Below are positions 40,889-58,433 of a stretch of DNA of 64,000 bases, in pieces. The notes under the pieces were generated by a model. It was not told the DNA's origin. It saw only the letters and a list, made by a program, of their open reading frames with translations, and did not search any database. Position 1 is the stretch's first letter. Every line of letters begins with the position of its first letter. The stretch comes from Rebecca billardiae RCC1528 (Eukaryota; Protista; Haptophyta): the NCBI GenBank assembly GCA_965240325.2, contig OZ251226.1, positions 2,108,001 through 2,172,000 of the forward strand. The letters run 5' to 3'. Position numbers and translations under genes: made by a program.

Positions 40889-40952
40889 TAAGCCCTGGAC
40901 GCCAGTGGGCGGCCGAAGCCCTGGACGGGCTCGATTTCGGTGGAGTGGCCTC
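40889..40952. repeat. Right arm of perfect 64-bp inverted repeat, about 200 bp upstream of the giant receptor ATG
   Basis: Exact reverse complement of 39746-39809. Confidence 0.9.
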
Positions 40953-41152
40953 GGTCGCTCCCCTCGGTCGCTCGACCACTCCGAACCCGCGTGCTGCCGT
41001 GCTCGGAAAGGCGCGAGATCAAGTACGTGCGCTTTTCGCGACGGGCCGCCGAGCTGCGCTGCGAACGCTCGACGACGCTGGCCCGGCCCGGCGAGCTTCG
41101 GGCGCACACGTCGTGGACGCGCCCTCACGTGTCGAGCAGGACGCCGGTCTCG

Positions 41153-44100
41153 ATGCGAGCAGCTCGCCCCGCACCACTCGCTCGGCGCGCCTGCCACCGG
41201 GCGCGCTGCGCGCTCCTGCTCTCGCTTGTCGCCTTCACGCAGCTACCCGCAGCATCAGCCGTCATTCCGGATCCGGTGCTGAGCGAGCAGAAGATCTCGT
41301 CGACGACCGGCGGCCTGAGCGCGACGCTGGCGAACCACAGCCGCTTCGGCTGGCGAGTGAAGCCCCTCGGCGACTTTGACGGCGACGGCGTCCAAGACCT
41401 GATCGTCGGCGCGCCGCCAGACACGCCGGCGGGCGGCACGGCCGGCGGCGCGGCGTACCTGCTGTACATGAAGAGCGACGGCACGGTGAAGGACGAGCGC
41501 GAGCTCACCCTCGGCGGCGCCATCCAGCTCGGCCACGGCGTCGGCACGCTCGGCGACGTGGACGGCGACAACGTGACCGACGTGATGCTCGGAGACGTTT
41601 GGCAGAGCGACGGCGGCCAGTTCCGCTCGGGCGCTGCGTACGTCGTGTTCCTCACTGCCGGCGGCACGGTCAAGGGCTCGCAGAAGATCTCGAACACCGC
41701 GGGCGGGCTGACGACCTTCCTGACCGGCAACAGCTTCTTCGGCTCGGACGTGGCCGGTCTGGGCGACCTCGACGGCGACGGCGTGCCCGACGCGCTCGTG
41801 GGGGCGCGCGCCGCCAACCGCGCGTTCACGCTCCTGCTGAACGCGGACGGCACCGTGAAGGCGGAGGTGGAGCACACGGGCATTGACAACTTTGGGATGG
41901 GCGTCGCGCCGCTGGGCGACCTCGACGGCGACGGTGTGATGGACGTGATCATCGGCGCGTCGCGCGACGACGACTCTGGCGGGAACGCGGGCGCGGCGTT
42001 CGTGCTCTTCCTCAACTCGAACGGCACGGTGCGGTTTTCGCAGAAGATCTCCGAGCTCGAGGGCGGCGGCCCGCCGCTGGACGGTAGTGACAACTTTGGC
42101 ACGAGCGTGGGCGGTCACGGCGTCGACGTGGACGGCGACGGCGTGCCGGACGCGATCGTGGGCGCGCCGTCGATCGACGGTGATCAGGAAGGCACCGTGT
42201 ACCTGCTCTTCCTGCGCACCGACGGCACGGTCCGGCACTACGACACGATCGCGAGCGGCGTGGGCGGCTTCTCCTCCGGGCTGGTCGACGGCCACGCGTT
42301 TGGGCGGGGCGTGGCGCTGCTCGCCAACTTCTCGGGCGACGGGCGCACGTACGCCGCGGCGGGCGCGCCGTTGGACGACGATCCTGGCACCGACGCGGGC
42401 GCGCTGTACATGATCGAGCTCTCGGGGTCCACGCCGCCGCCGCCCAGCCCGCCGCCCAGCCCGCCGCCCAGCCCGCCGCCCAGCCCGCCGCCAGACCCGC
42501 CGGCCGGGGTGCCGCCTGCTGCGCCAGCTGGTGCGCCGACCCCGCCGCCCAGCCCGCCGCCCAGCCCGCCGCCCAGCCCGCCGCCCAGCCCGCCGCCCAG
42601 CCCGCCGCCCAGCCCGCCGCCCAGCCCGCCGCCCAGCCCGCCGCCGAGGCCGCCGCCCCCGCCGAGCCCGCCGCCCTCACCACCGACCCCGCCCAGCCCG
42701 CCCTCGCCGCCGCCCGAGACGGTGCTGTCCACGCAGAAGATCTCGCCGACGGCCGGCGGCCTGAGCGCGACGCTGGCGAACCACAGCCGCTTCGGCTGGC
42801 GAGTGAAGCCCCTCGGCGACTTTGACGGCGACGGCGTCCAAGACCTGATCGTCGGCGCGCCGCCAGACACGCCGGCGGGCGGCACGGCCGGCGGCGCGGC
42901 GTACCTGCTGTACATGAAGAGCGACGGCACGGTGAAGGACGAGCGCGAGCTCACCCTCGGCGGCGCCATCCAGCTCGGCCACGGCGTCGGCACGCTCGGC
43001 GACGTGGACGGCGACAACGTGACCGACGTGATGCTCGGAGACGTTTGGCAGAGCGACGGCGGCCAGTTCCGCTCGGGCGCTGCGTACGTCGTGTTCCTCA
43101 CTGCCGGCGGCACGGTCAAGGGCTCGCAGAAGATCTCGAACACCGCGGGCGGGCTGACGACCTTCCTGACCGGCAACAGCTTCTTCGGCTCGGACGTGGC
43201 CGGTCTGGGCGACCTCGACGGCGACGGCGTGCCCGACGCGCTCGTGGGGGCGCGCGCCGCCAACCGCGCGTTCACGCTCCTGCTGAACGCGGACGGCACC
43301 GTGAAGGCGGAGGTGGAGCACACGGGCATTGACAACTTTGGGATGGGCGTCGCGCCGCTGGGCGACCTCGACGGCGACGGTGTGATGGACGTGATCATCG
43401 GCGCGTCGCGCGACGACGACTCTGGCGGGAACGCGGGCGCGGCGTTCGTGCTCTTCCTCAACTCGAACGGCACGGTGCGGTTTTCGCAGAAGATCTCCGA
43501 GCTCGAGGGCGGCGGCCCGCCGCTGGACGGTAGTGACAACTTTGGCACGAGCGTGGGCGGTCACGGCGTCGACGTGGACGGCGACGGCGTGCCGGACGCG
43601 ATCGTGGGCGCGCCGTCGATCGACGGTGATCAGGAAGGCACCGTGTACCTGCTCTTCCTGCGCACCGACGGCACGGTCCGGCACTACGACACGATCGCGA
43701 GCGGCGTGGGCGGCTTCTCCTCCGGGCTGGTCGACGGCCACGCGTTTGGGCGGGGCGTGGCGCTGCTCGCCAACTTCTCGGGCGACGGGCGCACGTACGC
43801 CGCGGCGGGCGCGCCGTTGGACGACGATCCTGGCACCGACGCGGGCGCGCTGTACATGCTCGAGCTCTCGGGGTCCACGCCGCCGCCGCCCAGCCCGCCG
43901 CCCAGCCCGCCGCCCAGCCCGCCGCCCAGCCCGCCGCCAGACCCGCCGGCCGGGGTGCCGCCTGCTGCGCCAGCTGGTGCGCCGACCCCGCCGCCCAGCC
44001 CGCCGCCCAGCCCGCCGCCCAGCCCGCCGCCCAGCCCGCCGCCCAGCCCGCCGCCCAGCCCGCCGCCCAGCCCGCCGCCCAGCCCGCCGCCCAGCCCGCC

Positions 44101-47100
44101 GCCCAGCCCGCCGCCAGACCCGCCGGCCGGGGTGCCGCCTGCTGCGCCAGCTGGTGCGCCGACCCCGCCGCCCAGCCCGCCGCCCAGCCCGCCGCCCAGC
44201 CCGCCGCCCAGCCCGCCGCCCAGCCCGCCGCCCAGCCCGCCGCCCAGCCCGCCGCCCAGCCCGCCGCCCAGCCCGCCGCCCAGCCCGCCGCCCAGCCCGC
44301 CGCCCAGCCCGCCGCCCAGCCCGCCGCCCAGCCCGCCGCCAGACCCGCCGGCCGGGGTGCCGCCTGCTGCGCCAGCTGGTGCGCCGACCCCGCCGCCCAG
44401 CCCGCCGCCCAGCCCGCCGCCCAGCCCGCCGCCCAGCCCGCCGCCCAGCCCGCCGCCCAGCCCGCCGCCCAGCCCGCCGCCCAGCCCGCCGCCCAGCCCG
44501 CCGCCGAGGCCGCCGCCCCCGCCGAGCCCGCCGCCCTCACCACCGACCCCGCCCAGCCCGCCCTCGCCGCCGCCCGAGACGGTGCTGTCCACGCAGAAGA
44601 TCTCGCCGACGGCCGGCGGCCTGAGCGCGACGCTGACGAACCACAGCCGCTTCGGCTGGCGAGTGAAGCCCCTCGGCGACTTTGACGGCGACGGCGTCCA
44701 AGACCTGATAGTGGGCGCGCCGCCAGACACGCCGGCGGGCGGCACGGCCGGCGGCGCGGCGTACCTGCTGTACATGAAGAGCGACGGCACGGTGAAGGAC
44801 GAGCGCGAGCTCACCATCGGCGGCACCATCCAGCTCGGCCACGGCGTCGGCACGCTCGGCGACGTGGACGGCGACAACGTGACCGACGTGATGCTCGGAG
44901 ACACTTGGCCGAGCGACGGCGGCGAGTTCCGCGCGGGCGCTGCGCACGTCGTGTTCCTCACCGCGGGCGGCACGGTCAAGGGCTCGCAGAAGATCTCCAA
45001 CACCGCGGGCGGGCTGACGACCTTCCTGACCGGCAACGGCTTCTTCGGCTCGGACGTGGCCGGTCTGGGCGACCTCGACGGCGACGGCGTGCCCGACGCG
45101 CTCGTGGGGGCGCGCGGTGACGGCCGCGCGTTCACGCTCCTGCTGAACGCGGACGGCACCGTGAAGGCGGAGGTGCTGCACGAGAGTTCGACGTTTGGTC
45201 TCTTGTGGAACTGGGGCTTTGGGATGGGCGTCGCGCCGTTGGGCGACCTCGACGGCGACGGCGTGGTTGACGCGATGGTGGGCGCGTTCCGCGACGGCAG
45301 CGCTGGCAGCAACGCGGGCGCGGCGTTTGTGCTCTTCCTCAACTCGAACGGCACGGTGCGCACGTTCCAGAAGATCGGAGAGGGTGTTGGAGGTGGCCCA
45401 CCGCTGGATCCCAGTGACGTCTTTGGCACGAGCGTGGGCGGTCACGGCGTCGACGTGGACGGCGACGGCGTGCCGGACGCGATCGTGGGCTCGCCGCAGC
45501 AAAATGGCGGCACGGCGTATCTGCTCTTCATGCGCACCGACGGCACGGTCCGGCACTACGAGCCGATCGCGAGCGGCGTGGGCGGCTTCCCGTCCGGGCT
45601 GGTCGACGGCGACCGCTTTGGCGAGGGCGTGGCGCTGATCGCCAACTTCAGCGGGGACGGGCGCACGTACGCCGCGGTGGGCGCGCCTTACGACGACGAT
45701 CCTGGCACCGACGTGGGCGCGCTGTGGATGCTCGAGCTCTCGGGGTACACGCCGCCCATGCCGAGCCCGCCGCCCAGCCCGCCGCCGAGCCCGCCGCCCA
45801 GCCCGCCGCCTAGCCCGCCGCCGAGCCCGCCGCCGCCGAGCCCGCCGCCCAGCCCGCCGCCGAGCCCGCCGCCCAGCCCGCCGCCTAGCCCGCCGCCTAG
45901 CCCGCCGCCGCCGAGCCCGCCGCCCAGCCCGCCCTCGCCGCCGCCCGAGACGGTGCTGTCCACGCAGAAGATCTCGCCGACGTCCGGCGGCCTGAGCGCG
46001 ACGCTCGCGAACAGCAGCGCATTCGGCTGGCGAATCGCGCCCCTCGGCGACTTTGACGGCGACGGCGTCCAGGACCTGATCGTCGGCGCGCCGTCGCTCA
46101 TCACTTCCGATGGCGCGGCGTGGCTGCTGTACATGAAGAGCGACGGCACGGTGAAGGACGAGCGCGAGCTCACCATCGGCGGCACCGACGAGCTCGGCCA
46201 CGGCGTGACAGCTCTCGGCGACGTGGACGGCGACAACGTGACCGACGTGATGCTCGGAGACATCTGGGACAACGACGGCATCCAGTTCCGCGCGGGCGCT
46301 GCGTACGTCGTGTTCCTCACCGCGGGCGGCACGGTCAAGGGCTCGCAGAAGATCTCGAACACCGCGGGCGGGCTGACGACCTTCCTGACCGGCAACAGCT
46401 TCTTCGGCTCGGACGTGGCCGGTCTGGGCGACCTCGACGGCGACGGCGTGCCCGACGCGCTCGTGGGGGCGCGCGGCGCCAACCGCGCGTTCACGCTCCT
46501 GCTCAACGCGGACGGCACCGTGAAGGCGGAGGTGGAGCACACGGGCAATGACAACTTTGGGATGGGCATCGCGCCGCTCGGCGACCTGGACGGCGACGGT
46601 GTGATGGACGTGATCATCGGCGCGTCGCGCGACACCGACTCTGGCTTCAACGCGGGCGCGGCGTTCGTGCTCTTCCTCAACACGGACGGCACGGCACGGT
46701 TTTCGCAGAAGATCTCCGAGCTCGAGGGCGGCGGCCCGCCGTTGGACATTAATGCCAACTTTGGCACGAGCGTGGGCGGCCACGGCGTCGACGTGGACGG
46801 CGACGGCGTGCCGGACGCGATCGTGGGCGCGCCGTCGATCGACGGTGATGAGGAAGGCACTGTGTACCTGCTCTTCCTGCGCACCGACGGCACGGTCCGG
46901 CACTACGAGCCGATCGCGAGCGGCGTGGGCGGCTTCTCCTCCGGGCTGGTCGACGGCGACGCGTTTGGGCGGGGCGTGGCGCTGCTCGCCAACTTCTCGG
47001 GCGACGGGCGCACGTACGCCGCGGCGGGCGCGCCGTTGGACGACGATCCTGGCACCGACGCGGGCGCGCTGTACATGCTCGAGCTCTCGGGGTCCACGCC

Positions 47101-50100
47101 GCCGTTGCCGAGCCCGCCGCCCAGCCCGCCGCCCAGCCCGCCGCCCAGCCCGCCGCCCAGCCCGCCGCCGAGGCCGCCGCCCCCGCCGAGCCCGCCGCCC
47201 TCACCACCGACCCCGCCCAGCCCGCCCTCGCCGCCGCCCGAGACGGTGCTGTCCACGCAGAAGATCTCGCCGACGGCCGGCGGCCTGAGCGCGACGCTGG
47301 CGAACCACAGCCGCTTCGGCTATCGCGTGAAGCCCCTCGGCGACTTTGACGGCGACGGCGTCCAAGACCTGATCGTGGGCGCGCCGCCAGACACAGAGTC
47401 GGGCGGCACGGCCGGCGGCGCGGCGTACCTGCTCTTCCTGAACGGCGACGGCACGGTGAAGGACGAGCGCGAGCTCACCATCGGCGGCGCCATCCAGCTC
47501 GGCCACGGCGTCGGCACGCTCGGCGACGTGGACGGCGACAACGTGACCGACGTGATGCTCGGAGACGTTTGGCAGAGCGACGGCGGCCAGTTCCGCTCGG
47601 GCGGCGCGTGGGTCGTGTTCCTCACCGCGGGCGGCACGGTCAAGGGCTCGCAGAAGATCTCGAACACCGCGGGCGGGCTGACGACCTTCCTGACCGGCAA
47701 CAGCTTCTTCGGCTCGGACGTGGCCGGTCTGGGCGACCTCGACGGCGACGGCGTGCCCGACGCGCTCGTGGGGGCGCGCGCCGCCAACCGCGCGTTCACG
47801 CTCCTGCTGAACGCGGACGGCACCGTGAAGGCGGAGGTGGAGCACACGGGCAGTGGCAACTTTGGGATGGGCGTCGCGCCGCTGGGCGACCTGGACGGCG
47901 ACGGCGTGGTTGACGCGATGGTGGGCGCGTTCCGCGACGGCAGCGCTGGCAGCAACGCGGGCGCGGCGTACGTGCTCTTCCTCAACTCGAACGGCACGGT
48001 GCGCGCGTCCCAGAAGATCGGAGAGGGTGTTGGAGGTGGCCCACCGCTGGATCCCAGCGACGTCTTTGGCACGAGCGTGGGCGGTCACGGCGTCGACGTG
48101 GACGGCGACGGCGTGCCGGACGCGATCGTGGGCTCGCCGCAAAATGGCGGCACGGCGTATCTGCTCTTCATGCGCACCGACGGCACGGTCCGGCACTACG
48201 AGCCGATCGCGAGCGGCGTGGGCGGCTTCCCGTCCGGGCTGGTCGACGGCGACCGCTTTGGCGAGGGCGTGGCGCTGATCGCCAACTTCAGCGGGGACGG
48301 GCGCACGTACGCCGCGGTGGGCGCGCCTTACGACGACGATCCTGGCACCGACGTGGGCGCGCTGTGGATGCTCGAGCTCTCGGGGTACACGCCGCCCATG
48401 CCGAGCCCGCCGCCCAGCCCGCCGCCGAGCCCGCCGCCCAGCCCGCCGCCGACCCCGCCGCCCAGCCCGCCGCCGCCGCCGCCGAGCCCGCCGCCAAGCC
48501 CGCCGCCGCCGGACACCTTCGTGTTCGGCACGTTTTTCGACGACGTGCTCAACCGCTCGACCAGCGCGATCGTCGACGCGCCCTGGGCGGCGGCCCCCGG
48601 GCCGACCGATCCGGCGGGCGTGGAGAATCGCGTGTACGGCCTCGGCGGCGACGATCTGATCGAAGGCGGCGACGCCGGCGCTGGCGTCTCGGACGGGTAC
48701 ACGGGCGGCGACGTGGTCAACTACCTCTCCGGCGGCGGCGGCAACGACACGCTCGTCGGCGGCGACGCCGGCGCCGCCGACAATGGCGGCAAGGGCGGCC
48801 TTGCGACCAATCGGCTCTACGCTGGTCCGGGCTCGGCGGACATGCTGATCGGTGGCGACGGCGGCTTCGCAAACTCGTCCGGCTCGTCGGGCGGCGACGC
48901 GCGCAACTACCTGTCCGCGAGCGCCGAGGGCAGCACGCTCGTGGGCGGCGACGGCGGCGACGGCATCAACGGCGGCGTCGGCGGCCAGGTGATCAACGAG
49001 CTGTATGGCGACGATGGCGACGACGTGCTGCGCGCAGGCGACACGGGCAACTCCATCAACGGCGGGCAGGCGTCGCTCAGTCAGACCCGCATGTACGGCG
49101 AGGGCGGCGACGACCAGTTCCACCTCGGCGTGGGCGACGGGGGGCAGAGCTGGTCCCCTTTCGGCGGCGGCACCCGCGGGTACGCGTACGGCGGCGACGG
49201 CGATGACAAGTTCTACGGCGGCCGCGCCGGCGATGGCCGCGGCGAGGTCGGGTTAGGCGCCTACTCGTACGCCTTCCTCTACGGCAACGACGGCAACGAC
49301 TACATCCGCGCCACCGACGCCGGCGACGCGCTCGGCGACGGCCACGGCGGCCGCGCGTACAACAAGGCGGACGGCGGCGCGGGCAACGACACGCTCTTCG
49401 GCGGCGACGGCGGCAACGCGTTCGGCGTCGGCGCCACCGGTGGGTACGCGTACAACTATCTGTACGGCAAAGAGGGCGCGGACACGATCTACGGCGGCAA
49501 CGGCGGGTACGCCAACGGGTCTACGTCGTACAGCGGCTACGTCAAAAACATCCTCGACGGCGGCGCGGACAACGACGTGCTGCACGGCGGCGACGGTGCG
49601 TTCGCGCGCAAAGACGCCGACGACGCCCTTTATGTAAACAACTACCTCTACGGCCGTGACGGCGACGACACCATCTACGGCGGCGACTTGTTTGCCGGCG
49701 ACGCCACGGCTGTCGGCCAGGTGTCCAACCAAATTAACGGTGCGCGCGCGCGTGCGCGCAGCCGCCACCCTACGCTCGCGCGCGCCTGAGCGCGCGCGCC
49801 CCCTGCCGCTGTCGCTGCTGCCTCCGCGCGCGCAGGCGGCGCCGGTGACGACCGAATCTTCGGCGGCACGGGGGTGGACACCGTGCGCGGCGGTGCGGGC
49901 GCCGACTACATCAACACGCTCGACGGCGGCACGGACAAGATCTACGCCGACCGATACGACACGATCGTCGCCGACCCCTTCGACATCATCGTCTGGCCAC
50001 CGAGCCCGCCGCCGAGCCCGCCGCCAGCACCGCCGGCGGGGTTGCCGCCAGCCCTCGCTCCGCCGGCCACTGCGCCGCCGCTGGGCGCGCCACCGGCAGG

Positions 50101-53800: not shown

Positions 53801-56800
53801 GGCCGCACCTCTTCCGAGTCCGCGACGCTCACCCTCGTCAACGACTACGTGCCGCAGGTGACCATGTCGCCGCTCAACCGCGCCAAGTACAACGCGCTGT
53901 GGGACGTGCCCGAGCTGGCGATCGGCGTGTCCGCGCAGCTCGACGAGGACGCGGCGCTCGCGCAGACGGTGGGCAACCTCACCTTCGAGTTCAACTGGGC
54001 GGTCACCGAGGTCGTGGGCGCCGCGCGCCTCGCGTCTGCTCTCGATGTCGCCGACGACACGGCGGTGACCACGACGGGCAACCGCAAGCCCAACTTCGTC
54101 TTCCGCTCGGGCGTGCTCACGCCCGGCGCGACGTACGCGCTCTCGCTCGAGGTGATCGGCGGGCAGGAGCCCTCGTACGCCGAGGTGCGCGTGCTGATCA
54201 ACCGGCCGCCGTACGGCGGCAGCCTCACGATCACGCCAGAGACCGGTCCCGCCTTCACCGAGTTTGCGTACGAGGCGGCCGACTGGACGGACGACGCGGA
54301 GGACCTGCCGCTCGCGTTCACGTTCGGGTACGTGAGGCCCGGCTCCGCGCTCGTGCAGTTCGTCACCGACGCGTCGGCGGAGGAGCGCGCGAGCGCGGTG
54401 CTGCCCGAGGGCGAGTACAACGCGACGGTGACCGTGGTCGACCAGTTTGACGGCGCGGTCGTCGAGCGCACGCCGGTCACCGTGCTGCCGGTCGCGGCCG
54501 ACGACCGGACGGCCGCGTTCACGCGCGAGAAGATCGACGGCGCGGGCGACGCGCTCGACGTGGGCAACGTCGAGGGCGCGCTGCAGCTGGTGCTCGCGGT
54601 CGCGGACGCGACGCTGCTCACCATCTCGCGCGAGGACGGCGCGGACGCGCAGCTGCTTGTGCTCGAGCTGCTCGACGTCACCTCGCTCAGCGCGGACGAG
54701 GCCGGCGGCGCGCAGGACGAGGCGCCGCGCGTGCAGCTCTCGGGCACCATCGCGACGGTGCTCGCCGTGCCGGCCGCCCTCGACGCCGACTCGCAGCTCG
54801 AGGGCGTGCGCCAGCTCTCGCTCGTGCTCTCGTCCACGGAGGCAGACGGCCTCGACGACACGACCGCGGCCAACTCGCTCGCGGGCCTGAACTCGGTGCT
54901 GCGCGCCGACGACCTCGTCGACAACGCGGTGCTGCTGCTCGCGCCGAGCACGGCGCAGCTCGACGACGAGCTGCAGGCGAGCCTGGCCACGCTCGCGAGC
55001 AACGCGCTGGTCGGCGTGCTGCCGGGCGAGGCGGCGCGCGAGGTGAGCGCCGAGCGCGTCTCGGTGCGCTCGCAGCGCGCTTTCGCCAACGAGCTCGCCA
55101 ACACCACCGTGCCCGGGCCCGGCGGCTCCGGCGGCGCGGCGCTCACGATCCCGGCCTCGCTCTTCGCGGACCGTGACGGCGACGGCGACGCGCTGCGCGG
55201 CGGCGTCGACGTGCGGCTCGTGCTGCTGCAGCGCAACACGCACGACGACCCGCGCGGCGCGAGCGGTGACGTGGACTCGGTGCCGCGCTCGCAGGTGGAC
55301 GGCGACGCCGCGGACTCGGACGACGTCTTTGAGCTGGGCGAGCAGCGCGCGCTGCAGTCGGCGCTCTTCTCCGTCACGCTCGCCTTCGCCTCGGACGGCA
55401 CCGAGCTCGCCATCGACGGCACGCGAGATCGCATCGTGATCGTGATCCCGCTGCTGCCCGCCTCGCAGCTCTTCACACTCGGCGACTCGGCGGAGGAGGA
55501 GGGCACGTGCTCGACCGACAACAGCTGCGCGGCCGACGGCGACGTGTCCCGCGGCGTGTGCAACGCCACGTCGGGCGCGTGCGAGTGCGCGCCCAGCTTC
55601 GCCGGGCCGGCGTGCGACGAGCTCACGCTGTGCCACTTCTGGTGCGCGCGCGTCCACGGCACGGCTGTCTCGCTGCGCCGCGCCGCGCCTGCGCGCCCGC
55701 CGTGCCGACTGACCGCCCGCACGCCCACTCGGCCCCCGCCCGCGACTGGCTGCCTGCCGCGCAGGAACGAGAGCTCGCAGCTCTGGTCGACCGAGGGCTG
55801 CAGCTCGCAGCTCTCACCGGACGGCGCGTCGGTCGAGTGCGCGTGCGACCACCTCACCGGTGCGGAGCCGTGTCGCGCGCGCGAGCGCGCCCGCTGCCAC
55901 TCCCGACCTCGCGCGGCCGCGCGCGCGCACGCGCTCACCCGCCACGTGTGTGCCCGCGCGCGCGCGCGCCCGCTTTGCAGACTTTGCCGCCCTCGCCGTC
56001 GCCGTCCAGCGCCTCGCGACCGGCGAGGAGGCGGTCACCGCGCCCGAGGTGAACCTTCCGACCGACACGGAGGATCTGGAGGATGCGGACGCGGAGCAGG
56101 TTGCGGCCATCCTGTCGGCGCGGCTGGAGACGAACTTCTGGGGCGTGGTGCTGGTCAGCGCCGCGCTCGGCCTCTTCTTCGCGCTCTTCGGCCTCGCGTA
56201 CACCATCGACGTCGCCGTCGAGACAGAGCCGTCCGTGCCGTTCTGGAAGCAGCGCGCGGAGAAGTCGCGGCTGTGGGCGGCCGCCGCGGCTCTGCTCGCC
56301 AAGTCGTCGGCCACCTCCTGGATCACGCGGCTGCCGGGCGAGAGCATCACGGTGCGTGCGCCGCGCCACACGGGGCGACGCTCGCGCGTGCGCAGCCGCG
56401 AGCGCGTCGGCCTCGCCGCCTGCTCGCGCCACGCCCACGCGCGCCCTTGTCGACCGTCCCCGCCTCCGACCCTTCCCGACCCCGACCCTTCCCGCCTCCG
56501 ACCGCCCGCACAGGCCAAGCAGCGGCTGATGAGCCTGCTCACCGTGGCGCTGCTCGAGCTGTTTGTGATGGCGCTCTTCCTCGGCGTCCCAGAGAATCAG
56601 AGCTCGTCGCAGATCGTCTTCGCCGTGCTCGTTGGACTGGTCGCGGGCTTCCCGTTCGAGGTGCTCTTCCTCGACAACCTGTGGAACTGGGCGGCGAAGA
56701 GGCGCGGGCTGCTCGACGCGCGGCCGGACGACCAGCGTGACGAGCAGGCGCGCCGGGACTCGCTGCGCGTGGACGATGCTCGCACGCCGGCGGCGCCGGG

Positions 56801-58433
56801 GCGCGGCCTCACGCTGGCGCGCTCCCTCGGCCTCTTCAGCTCGAGCGCGTCGCTCTCGCGCACGACGGGCGGCGGCGCCGAGCCGAGCGCCACGATGGCC
56901 GCGACGACGACGCGGGGCGAGAGCAGCGGCGATGGCGTCGGCGGCGGCGCGGCCGAGGGCGGCGGCGACGCGGGCGGCGGCGGCAACGGCTCCGGCGCGG
57001 CCGGCTCGCGCCCCGCCCGGAACGGAGCGGCCGAGTTCCCGATCCGGTACGTGCGGCCGGACAACGTGCGGCAGATCGGACCGGCGCCCGTGGCCGCCGC
57101 GCTGGAGACGCGCGGCGGGCAGCCGAGCGCAACGAGCAGCCTTGGCGCGGGCACAGGCCAGGAGTCGGAGGAGGCCGTGCGCGCGCGCAAGCGCTCGGCG
57201 CGGCGCGAGGCGGCGCGCGCGCTGCGCCAGAGCCAGGCGCAGGTGGTCGGCAGCGTGCGGCTGCCGCCGCTGCCCCCGAACATGGCAGGCGCCGTCTCGA
57301 TGCCCGTTCAGGCGCTCATCTCCATCCCCACCTTCCACGGCCAGCTGGTCGGCTTCTTTGTCGCGGGCTCGGCCCATGTCGAGCGCGCGCAGATCACGCG
57401 CAGCCAGACCGACAGGTCGCGCGCGTCAGAGCCGGAGGCCGAGCCTGAGCCCGCGCCGCCGCCGCGCTCGGTGATGGGCCGGCTGTGCCCACCCGCGCCC
57501 ACGCCGCCCTCGGCCTTCGGCGACGAGAACCCCACCCCCGGCCGCGACGACCGCGGCGAGGCGGCGCACGCCGCCGAGAGCGGGCTGATGCCGGACGTTC
57601 GCTTTGTGCAGGCGGAGTACGTGTACAAGCTGCCCGCGATCAGCCCCGAGGATCTCGAGGCGCTGTACCGCACCAAGCCGCGCGGCCGGCGCGAGTCCGC
57701 TGTCGCGGCCGGCGCCACCAAGATCGCCGCGCGGCTGCCTGGCTTCTCCAAGGCGCAGTCCTCGCGATCTGCCGGCGCGAGGTCGAAGCCTGCCAAGGTC
57801 AAGATGGCGTACGTCGCGTACGCGACCAGCCCGTTCGGCGACGGGCACGACGTGCTGCCGTCGGAGGTGATCGCCGCGCCCGACGTCGCGACGCAAGCCG
57901 CGCTCGAGGCGTATGAGCGCGCGGAGGCCGCGGCGGCGGCCGACGCAAGCGGCCCCGACCTGAGCGCGCGCGTGCTGCGCCGCGTGCTGCTCACGCGCGA
58001 CGACCTCGAGTCGGCGGGCTGGTGGGCGAATCGGCCGAAGAAGTGGAAGCGGCAAGTGGCGTGGGCCGTGCAGATCATCCTCGCGCTGGTGTTGGTCTGC
58101 TTTCTCATCTCCTTCTCCCTCCTTGGCACTTCCTCGCAGGACGGCGAGCGCTCGGTGCGCGACCCGAGTACGTGGCGTGAGCAGGTGATCCAGGCGTGGG
58201 GCATCGAGACGGCGTTCAAGCTGGCGGTGCTCGAGCCGGGCTCGGTCCTGTTCACGGCGATCGTCGCGTATCTCGTCTCGAAGCTGCCCGAGGCGTGGCG
58301 CGATTGGTTTACGGAGGTCTTTGTGGAGCCGCTGCTGCACCAGCTGCGCAGGCCGCTAGCCGCGCTCAAGGATATGACGAGCGGCACGCTCGGCAACGCG
58401 GTCAACGTCGTGGGGGTGGCTGCTGGGACGTAA
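41153..58433 (+). CDS. Giant polycystin-1-like surface receptor, copy B (~5,590 aa): signal peptide, 5 FG-GAP (integrin-alpha-like) propellers with SPPP linkers, RTX repeats, IPT/TIG, REJ, EGF, GPS, 5 TM
   Basis: Introns 49740-49835, 55642-55764, 55860-55980 and 56352-56513 give a continuous frame. FG...GDxDGDG..D..VGA repeats, GGxGxD repeats, REJ-like INRPPYGG...WTDD.EDLPL.F.FGY, and GPS CACDHL/TDF. PKD1-like TM motifs QRLMSLL and W...LEPG. Confidence 0.88.
41275..48400 (+). repeat. Five tandem ~1.15-kb FG-GAP propeller modules (about 41275-42430, 42721-43876, 44581-45755, 45952-47100, 47245-48395) separated by (CCGCCGCCCAGC)n linkers
   Basis: Modules 1 and 2 are nearly identical at DNA level. 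Modules 3-5 are variant or mosaic. Confidence 0.9.
48510..49995 (+). other. RTX/hemolysin-type Ca2+-binding nonapeptide repeat region within copy B
   Basis: GLGGDDLIEGG, GGGGNDTLVGG, GGAGNDTLFGG, GRDGDDTIYGG, GGAGADYI. A spliceosomal intron (49740-49835) lies inside it. Confidence 0.85.
50230..58418 (+). repeat. Right arm of ~8.2 kb inverted duplication (partner ~21610-29880)
   Basis: Colinear with copy A, including three shared intron positions. Confidence 0.9.

Follow-up and report, generated by a model that had tools for sequence, protein, structure and literature searches.

How does a row of near-identical protein modules become a patchwork, and does the patchwork shuffle the loops with which such modules would bind ligands? 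The question is raised by a 64,000-nt window of the haptophyte Rebecca billardiae RCC1528 (assembly GCA_965240325.2, contig OZ251226.1, positions 2,108,001 to 2,172,000 of the forward strand; coordinates below are those of the window), which has a G+C content of about 73% and in which five FG-GAP propeller modules, M1 to M5, form a tandem array at 41270-48397 (+), within one 8.6-kb exon of a gene for a secreted REJ/GPS receptor-like protein. An earlier, sequence-only reading had proposed that segmental gene conversion shuffles ligand-binding loops on a constant scaffold. The analysis points to a different history, with a probability of roughly 70%: tandem duplication, together with unequal crossover or gene conversion and change on a less constrained, probably ligand-facing surface, produced four heads on one stalked receptor.

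Mosaic ancestry of the modules

The five modules, each 386-394 aa long and separated by (SPPP)n linkers of about 40-230 aa, and the two landmarks of their duplication and exchange are as follows.

41270-42439 (+): module M1, type A, an FG-GAP propeller with six blades (99.2% DNA identity to M2)
42716-43885 (+): module M2, type A, the module used for the structure model (AlphaFold2)
44576-45757 (+): module M3, with a front close to type A and a back of type B (alignment)
45947-47104 (+): module M4, with a private front and a type-A back (alignment)
47240-48397 (+): module M5, a chimera of a type-A-like front (to 47882) and a type-B back (from 47905) (alignment)
41307-42646 (+), copied at 42753-44092: unit of a recent tandem duplication (1446 nt), the two copies differing at one site over about 1340 nt
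47882-47905 (+): main recombination breakpoint interval in M5 (maximum chi-squared 79.6, permutation p<0.0005)

M1 and M2 had been called almost identical, and they are indeed the closest pair, followed in DNA identity by M3-M5 (95.3%), M2-M4 (93.9%), M2-M3 (90.4%) and M3-M4 (86.6%). In particular, M1 and M2 have 9 differences, 8 of which lie within the first 60 nt, beside the signal peptide, and the unit in which they were duplicated extends about 205 nt into the linker. Every segment quoted in the sequence-only reading, for whichever module, is present in its place. M3 carries a private 7-aa insertion within 45185-45217.

The chimeric nature of M5, previously described as an M1-type first half joined to an M3-type second half, is borne out by the alignment. 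Of the 33 discriminating sites up to column 664 (window position 47882), 29 have the M2 state in M5; of the 73 from column 687 (47905) onwards, 71 have the M3 state. The interval between these columns corresponds to 45239-45262 in M3 and to 43358-43381 in M2, and the near-identity of the type-B back to M3 persists over roughly the first 37 nt of the linker that follows. Moreover, M3 and M5 have 48 nucleotide differences in the front 700 columns and 6 in the back 491, and the ratio of M3-private to shared sites turns from 29:4 in the front to 2:71 in the back. The unique front and M1-type back attributed to M4 are likewise found: its private front (45983-46324) contains a 4-aa deletion, and its back equals M2 at 86 of 90 sites. 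A few short front-half tracts, with four informative sites, are common to M3 and M4 only.

Recombination tests of the kind that the sequence-only reading had suggested for the aligned modules are significant. The maximum chi-squared statistic of the M5/M2/M3 triplet (79.6, p<0.0005) is accompanied by significant values for the remaining triplets; a GENECONV-like test, which scores the longest unbroken stretch of polymorphic sites that two modules share, is significant for most pairs (pairwise p<=0.003), with M3-M5 reaching a global p of 0.0002; a statistic resembling the pairwise homoplasy index is 0.062, versus 0.115 under permutation (p<0.0005); and 319 of 2775 informative site pairs fail the four-gamete test. 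Further, the synonymous divergence (dS) is uneven along the modules: from front to back it rises from 0.054 to 0.212 for M2-M3 and falls from 0.070 to 0.023 for M3-M5; selection on the protein alone is therefore no explanation. In maximum-likelihood (ML) trees, M5 groups with M1/M2 when the front is used (bootstrap 67) and with M3 when the back is used (bootstrap 93), and in the approximately unbiased (AU) test the back-half data reject the front-half tree (p=2e-7). Overall, uneven ancestry along the modules is strongly supported, and outright conflict between the trees is moderately supported.

Fold and calcium-binding motifs

Across the whole array protein, the Pfam FG-GAP profile (PF01839) matches 11 stretches with an E-value of 1e-68 and a score of 226.8 bits (cut-off 22.1), and the FG-GAP_3 and FG-GAP_2 profiles likewise exceed their own cut-offs. 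The AlphaFold2 model of M2, built on an alignment with 92 other sequences, has a predicted local distance difference score (pLDDT) of 94.1 and a predicted TM-score (pTM) of 0.93; its 24 strands form six four-stranded blades, and the last blade is closed by the N-terminal strand. Between strands 1 and 2 of the blades, each module has five canonical DxDxD[GN]xxD motifs and a degenerate sixth, and all 25 canonical motifs of the five modules are retained. The closed propeller, the four-stranded blades and the Ca2+ loops of the FG-GAP family are thus all present in the model, and the modules are predicted to bind Ca2+.

The earlier description of the modules as integrin-like holds for the FG-GAP family and for the nearest solved folds, which are integrin alpha heads (TM-scores of 0.56-0.61 to the M2 model), but it does not extend to the number of blades: the model gives six per module, and the seven-bladed integrin reading was rejected. 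Pfam finds zero matches to thigh or calf (Integrin_alpha2) domains in 41153-49789 and in the downstream frames.

Position of the variable residues

The faces of the propeller were assigned from the strand topology of the M2 model, by which the 4-1 and 2-3 loops share one face (the top) and the 1-2 and 3-4 loops share the opposite one (the bottom). Among M2 to M5, variation is found in 64 of 151 columns of the top-face loops, which adjoin the FG and GA(P) motifs, in 5 of 79 columns of the bottom-face loops and in 26 of 159 strand columns. The top-face loops differ both from all other columns combined (31/238; Fisher p=1e-10) and from the bottom-face loops (p=2e-9); the 1-2 loops vary at 1 of 54 columns, and every indel lies in a top-face loop. 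The sequence-only reading had noticed that differences cluster next to the GA/FG motifs while the calcium motifs stay constant, and had asked whether the variable sites fall on one face; by the strand topology of the model they do, on the face opposite the predicted Ca2+ hairpins.

The twelve top-face loops are the same in M1 and M2 throughout; M3 is different in eleven of them and M4 has its own variant in ten, while M5 has type-A loops in blades 2-3, type-B loops in blades 4-6 and private ones elsewhere. In 8 of the 12 loops there are variants private to a single module, which therefore did not originate by reshuffling of the present copies. Moreover, in 89 mostly bacterial homologues the top-face loops have the highest column entropy (1.74-1.90 versus 1.12-1.17 bits, p=6e-7), and the columns that vary between the modules are the most variable ones of the wider family. 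With the top-face loops least conserved family-wide, the face bias of the array is the wider family's default.

In integrins, the Ca2+ hairpins occupy the lower face and ligands bind to the upper face, where the 4-1 and 2-3 loops reportedly lie. By analogy, the variable surface of the array modules is probably the ligand-facing one. The protein has four different heads (M1=M2, M3, M4 and M5), whose binding partners probably differ. An RGD tripeptide (45113-45121) occurs in M3 only, in the short 2-3 loop of blade 3, and may well be there by chance; the modules other than M3 read RAAN or RGAN at the equivalent site.

Selection on the array

The ratio of nonsynonymous to synonymous substitution rates (omega, or dN/dS) was estimated pairwise with the Goldman-Yang ML codon model and F3x4 frequencies, for modules whose G+C content at third codon positions (GC3) is 91-94%. 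In the top-face loops omega is 0.25-0.59, a departure from 1 that is significant in three of five pairs (p<0.002); outside these loops it is 0.17-0.31. The scaffold is under purifying selection. The dN/dS comparison across paralogs, which the sequence-only reading had proposed, thus yields no ratio above 1 in the variable loops of this array, and positive selection is not shown. Nei-Gojobori omega values of 0.65-1.4 and an apparent synonymous excess in the loops were both rejected as artefacts of the 93% GC3 and of codons with several changed bases; neither appears with the ML codon model or in a count of codons whose changes are synonymous only. Such codons show no significant enrichment in the loops within either half. 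What looks patchy is thus for the most part amino-acid replacement in loops that tolerate it, laid over a coarse front/back mosaic.

Donor copies and nearest relatives

In the rest of the genome (72 Mb in 41 contigs), no donor copies were found for the private patches of M3 and M4. These patches have counterparts of 65-79% identity over longer DNA stretches, with higher values only at short words of conserved motifs, and the next-best module elsewhere in the genome has 58% protein identity. The silent donor copies of cassette-type antigenic or ligand variation did not appear in the genome-wide DNA search. The nearest proteins are uncharacterised bacterial FG-GAP proteins with 35-47% identity, many of which have several propellers; a word-based protein search with one module and the whole exon, together with a metagenome contig scan, found no orthologues or strain variants above 47% identity.

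Proposed origin and alternatives

The five modules are tandem paralogues of a six-bladed FG-GAP propeller, predicted to bind Ca2+; with the (SPPP)n stalks that carry them, they make up the outermost part of a secreted receptor-like protein of the REJ/GPS kind. Whole module-plus-linker units would duplicate, M1/M2 being the latest case, and misaligned copies would swap segments by unequal crossover or gene conversion; such exchange would have created the M5 chimera and would account for the greater similarity of the front halves compared with the back halves. Replacements would build up at sites to which the fold is tolerant, namely the 4-1 and 2-3 loops opposite the Ca2+ hairpins. No sign of a dedicated loop-shuffling mechanism was found: what is seen is a coarse mosaic, in which a few short tracts accompany a single main breakpoint.

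Several points weigh against this history. The AU rejection goes one way, as the front-half data do not reject the back-half tree (p=0.21), and the case for recombination therefore rests more on uneven distances than on conflicting trees. The exchange may have been gene conversion as opposed to crossover; a single genome cannot separate the two, and the assembly is unchecked against reads. Further, a second array in this genome, with three contiguous tandem modules of 93-99% DNA identity (contig C1:1020681-1024223, minus strand), has an omega of about 1.7-2.1 in its top-face loops versus 0.14-0.20 elsewhere, and some diversifying selection in this family is possible. The second array has the same kind of face bias (31/149 columns in top-face loops versus 8/237 elsewhere, p=9e-8), evenly spread synonymous change, and a contrast in nonsynonymous to synonymous changes between loops and the remainder (p=7e-6), with a loop omega that is not different from 1 (p=0.06-0.21; p=0.21 for an omega of 1.69). 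Diversifying or relaxed selection is hinted at more clearly by this second array than by the five-module one.

The tree that joins M3 and M5, left standing by the front-half data, would be expected if no recombination had occurred, M3 and M5 being sisters over their full length whose back half evolved faster in their common ancestor through a region-specific change of rate. This history is highly improbable: synonymous divergence differs about fourfold between the halves, the M3-M5 differences of 48 in the front and 6 in the back are unexpected for sisters of the same age, and the M3-private and shared sites change places between the halves. A similarly small chance attaches to an error of assembly, by which the M1/M2 pair or the chimeric M5 would stem from repeats mis-joined or collapsed when the consensus was built. 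Repeats of 1.3-1.9 kb with 87-99% identity and low-complexity linkers are hard to assemble; however, 41 contigs for 72 Mb suggest long reads, the 8.8-kb frame is unbroken through all modules and linkers, the whole array of 7.2 kb is below a typical long-read length, and the independent array on contig C1 is similarly built.

The proposal of the sequence-only reading is a combinatorial generator of diversity, in which short conversion tracts reshuffle single loops on a fixed scaffold and selection favours new ligand specificities. Its recombination signal and its one-face variation stand, and the few short tracts common to M3 and M4, the Nei-Gojobori omega near 1 in the top-face loops and the loop omega of the second array speak for it as well. 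Against it, the Nei-Gojobori values are those inflated by GC3, the ML estimates for the loops are below 1, and the face bias is equal across the whole family; loop-by-loop shuffling finds no match in the single clear breakpoint, which lies mid-module and not at loop boundaries, in the private variants of 8 of 12 loops or in a genome searched for donor copies that it lacks. Such a generator is accordingly unlikely, and duplication with coarse exchange and divergence in tolerant loops is preferred.

Gene and exon architecture

The array lies in a single open frame (40940-49789, +) whose first ATG is at 41153. The remaining features of its exon, and the intron that follows, are listed here.

41153-41260 (+): start codon and probable signal peptide, 36 aa, with a hydrophobic core and ending in ASA (judged by eye)
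42440-42715 (+): linker 1, (SPPP)n, 92 aa (repeats with a 12-nt period)
43886-44575 (+): linker 2, (SPPP)n, 230 aa (translation, repeats)
45758-45946 (+): linker 3, (SPPP)n (translation, repeats)
47105-47239 (+): linker 4, (SPPP)n (translation, repeats)
48398-48520 (+): linker 5, (SPPP)n (translation, repeats)
48521-49739 (+): Gly/Asp-rich tail with RTX nonapeptide repeats, at the end of which the first exon ends (Pfam PF00353, 38.2 bits, cut-off 23)
49740-49835 (+): probable 96-nt GT..AG intron, whose removal would fuse the array exon in frame with the open frame that follows (sequence read)

The linkers consist of the Ser-Pro(3-4) repeats typical of extensin-like or hydroxyproline-rich glycoprotein (HRGP) linkers, in runs of 45-230 aa between the modules, and their DNA repeats with a 12-nt period. 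Linker 2 has three copies, and linker 1 one copy, of a sub-repeat that bears a DPPAGVPP..APAGAPT insert, a sign of repeated expansion within the stalk-coding DNA. By analogy with algal HRGPs (PMC11015965), the linkers may be hydroxylated, rod-like stalks.

Pfam domains were scanned separately in the exons on either side of the intron; over 15 kb of coding sequence showed no other intron. Downstream, the open frame 49874-56740 matches REJ (6.5e-43), IPT/TIG (3.6e-18) and GPS (7.3e-5). With REJ, TIG, GPS and RTX domains downstream of it in the same gene, the array forms the outer end, at the N-terminus, of a giant surface protein of receptor-like type, and it would be displayed outside the cell. 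The open frame 55860-58433, expected to hold the membrane part, has zero Pfam matches at E<=0.01.

FG-GAP arrays elsewhere in the genome

The FG-GAP family in this genome is large and repeatedly duplicated. The modules of the second array, on contig C1, have no proline linkers. Further FG-GAP arrays are seen on contigs C10 (about 2818000-2834000), C11 (about 829000-839000), C13 and C19; they include runs of equal-scoring units with a 1287-nt spacing and, on C19, three copies about 17.5 kb apart.

Relation to known systems

The array has in common with the integrin alpha propeller the FG-GAP repeats, the DxDxDGxxD Ca2+ hairpins in the 1-2 loops and the best structure matches, and its variable 4-1 and 2-3 loops lie on the face that reportedly binds ligand in integrins. 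Unlike an integrin, it has six blades instead of seven and five propellers in one chain, and its gene has a REJ/GPS module as the anchor, whereas an integrin is anchored by a single helix; there is no evidence of a beta subunit here, and no search for one was made. Bacterial FG-GAP proteins with several propellers (in Planctomycetota, Actinomycetota and others) share the six-repeat unit, with a consensus of QKIS..GGF..FG..GDLDGDG, and many of them combine several propellers with RTX or cadherin domains; however, they are prokaryotic and have neither (SPPP)n stalks nor a REJ/GPS base.

Tandem domain repeats under concerted evolution are familiar from the yeast FLO and Candida ALS adhesins and from the repeat adhesins of staphylococci and streptococci. 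These share with the array their in-frame near-identical units, changes in copy number, chimeric units made by unequal recombination and low-complexity spacers; in contrast, the unit of the array is not a short stalk repeat but a complete 390-aa propeller, predicted to bind Ca2+, whose copies have become four distinct heads by divergence. To our knowledge, no characterised protein carries several FG-GAP heads of six blades on extensin-like rods. As a variant, this architecture is new; the process by which it evolved is familiar, with duplication in tandem, unequal exchange and loops that change faster.

For the stalks, a useful analogy is MST3 of Chlamydomonas, the mastigoneme core, which is a giant extracellular, hydroxyproline-rich polyproline-II rod with a polycystin-type membrane tether and a precedent for Ser-Pro-rich stalks as stiff filaments hundreds of nanometres long (PMC11015965). 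MST3 has no FG-GAP propellers, and the resemblance is a lead and not a claim of membership. Its PKD-like domain, which has no helix S1, is a lead for the membrane part at 55860-58433. FG-GAP proteins without the integrin layout have also been noted in stramenopile algae (10.1101/2024.02.19.579948).

More broadly, the FG-GAP heads of this alga's giant stalked receptors might form a rapidly diversifying recognition repertoire, driven by intragenic exchange and by positive selection on the top-face loops, of which the loop omega of about 2 in the C1 array is a hint; the suggestion is an unlikely one. If true, it would yield multivalent heads with new specificities for prey, partners, bacteria or surfaces, and eukaryotic microbes would have their own equivalent of variable adhesin and receptor families, built on a six-bladed integrin-type propeller. 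Without population data, it would be wrong to describe the array as a device for shuffling loops. Little is understood of integrin-type propellers outside animals, and the array provides four natural variants of one scaffold, differing almost only on one face, as a convenient set for questions about binding.

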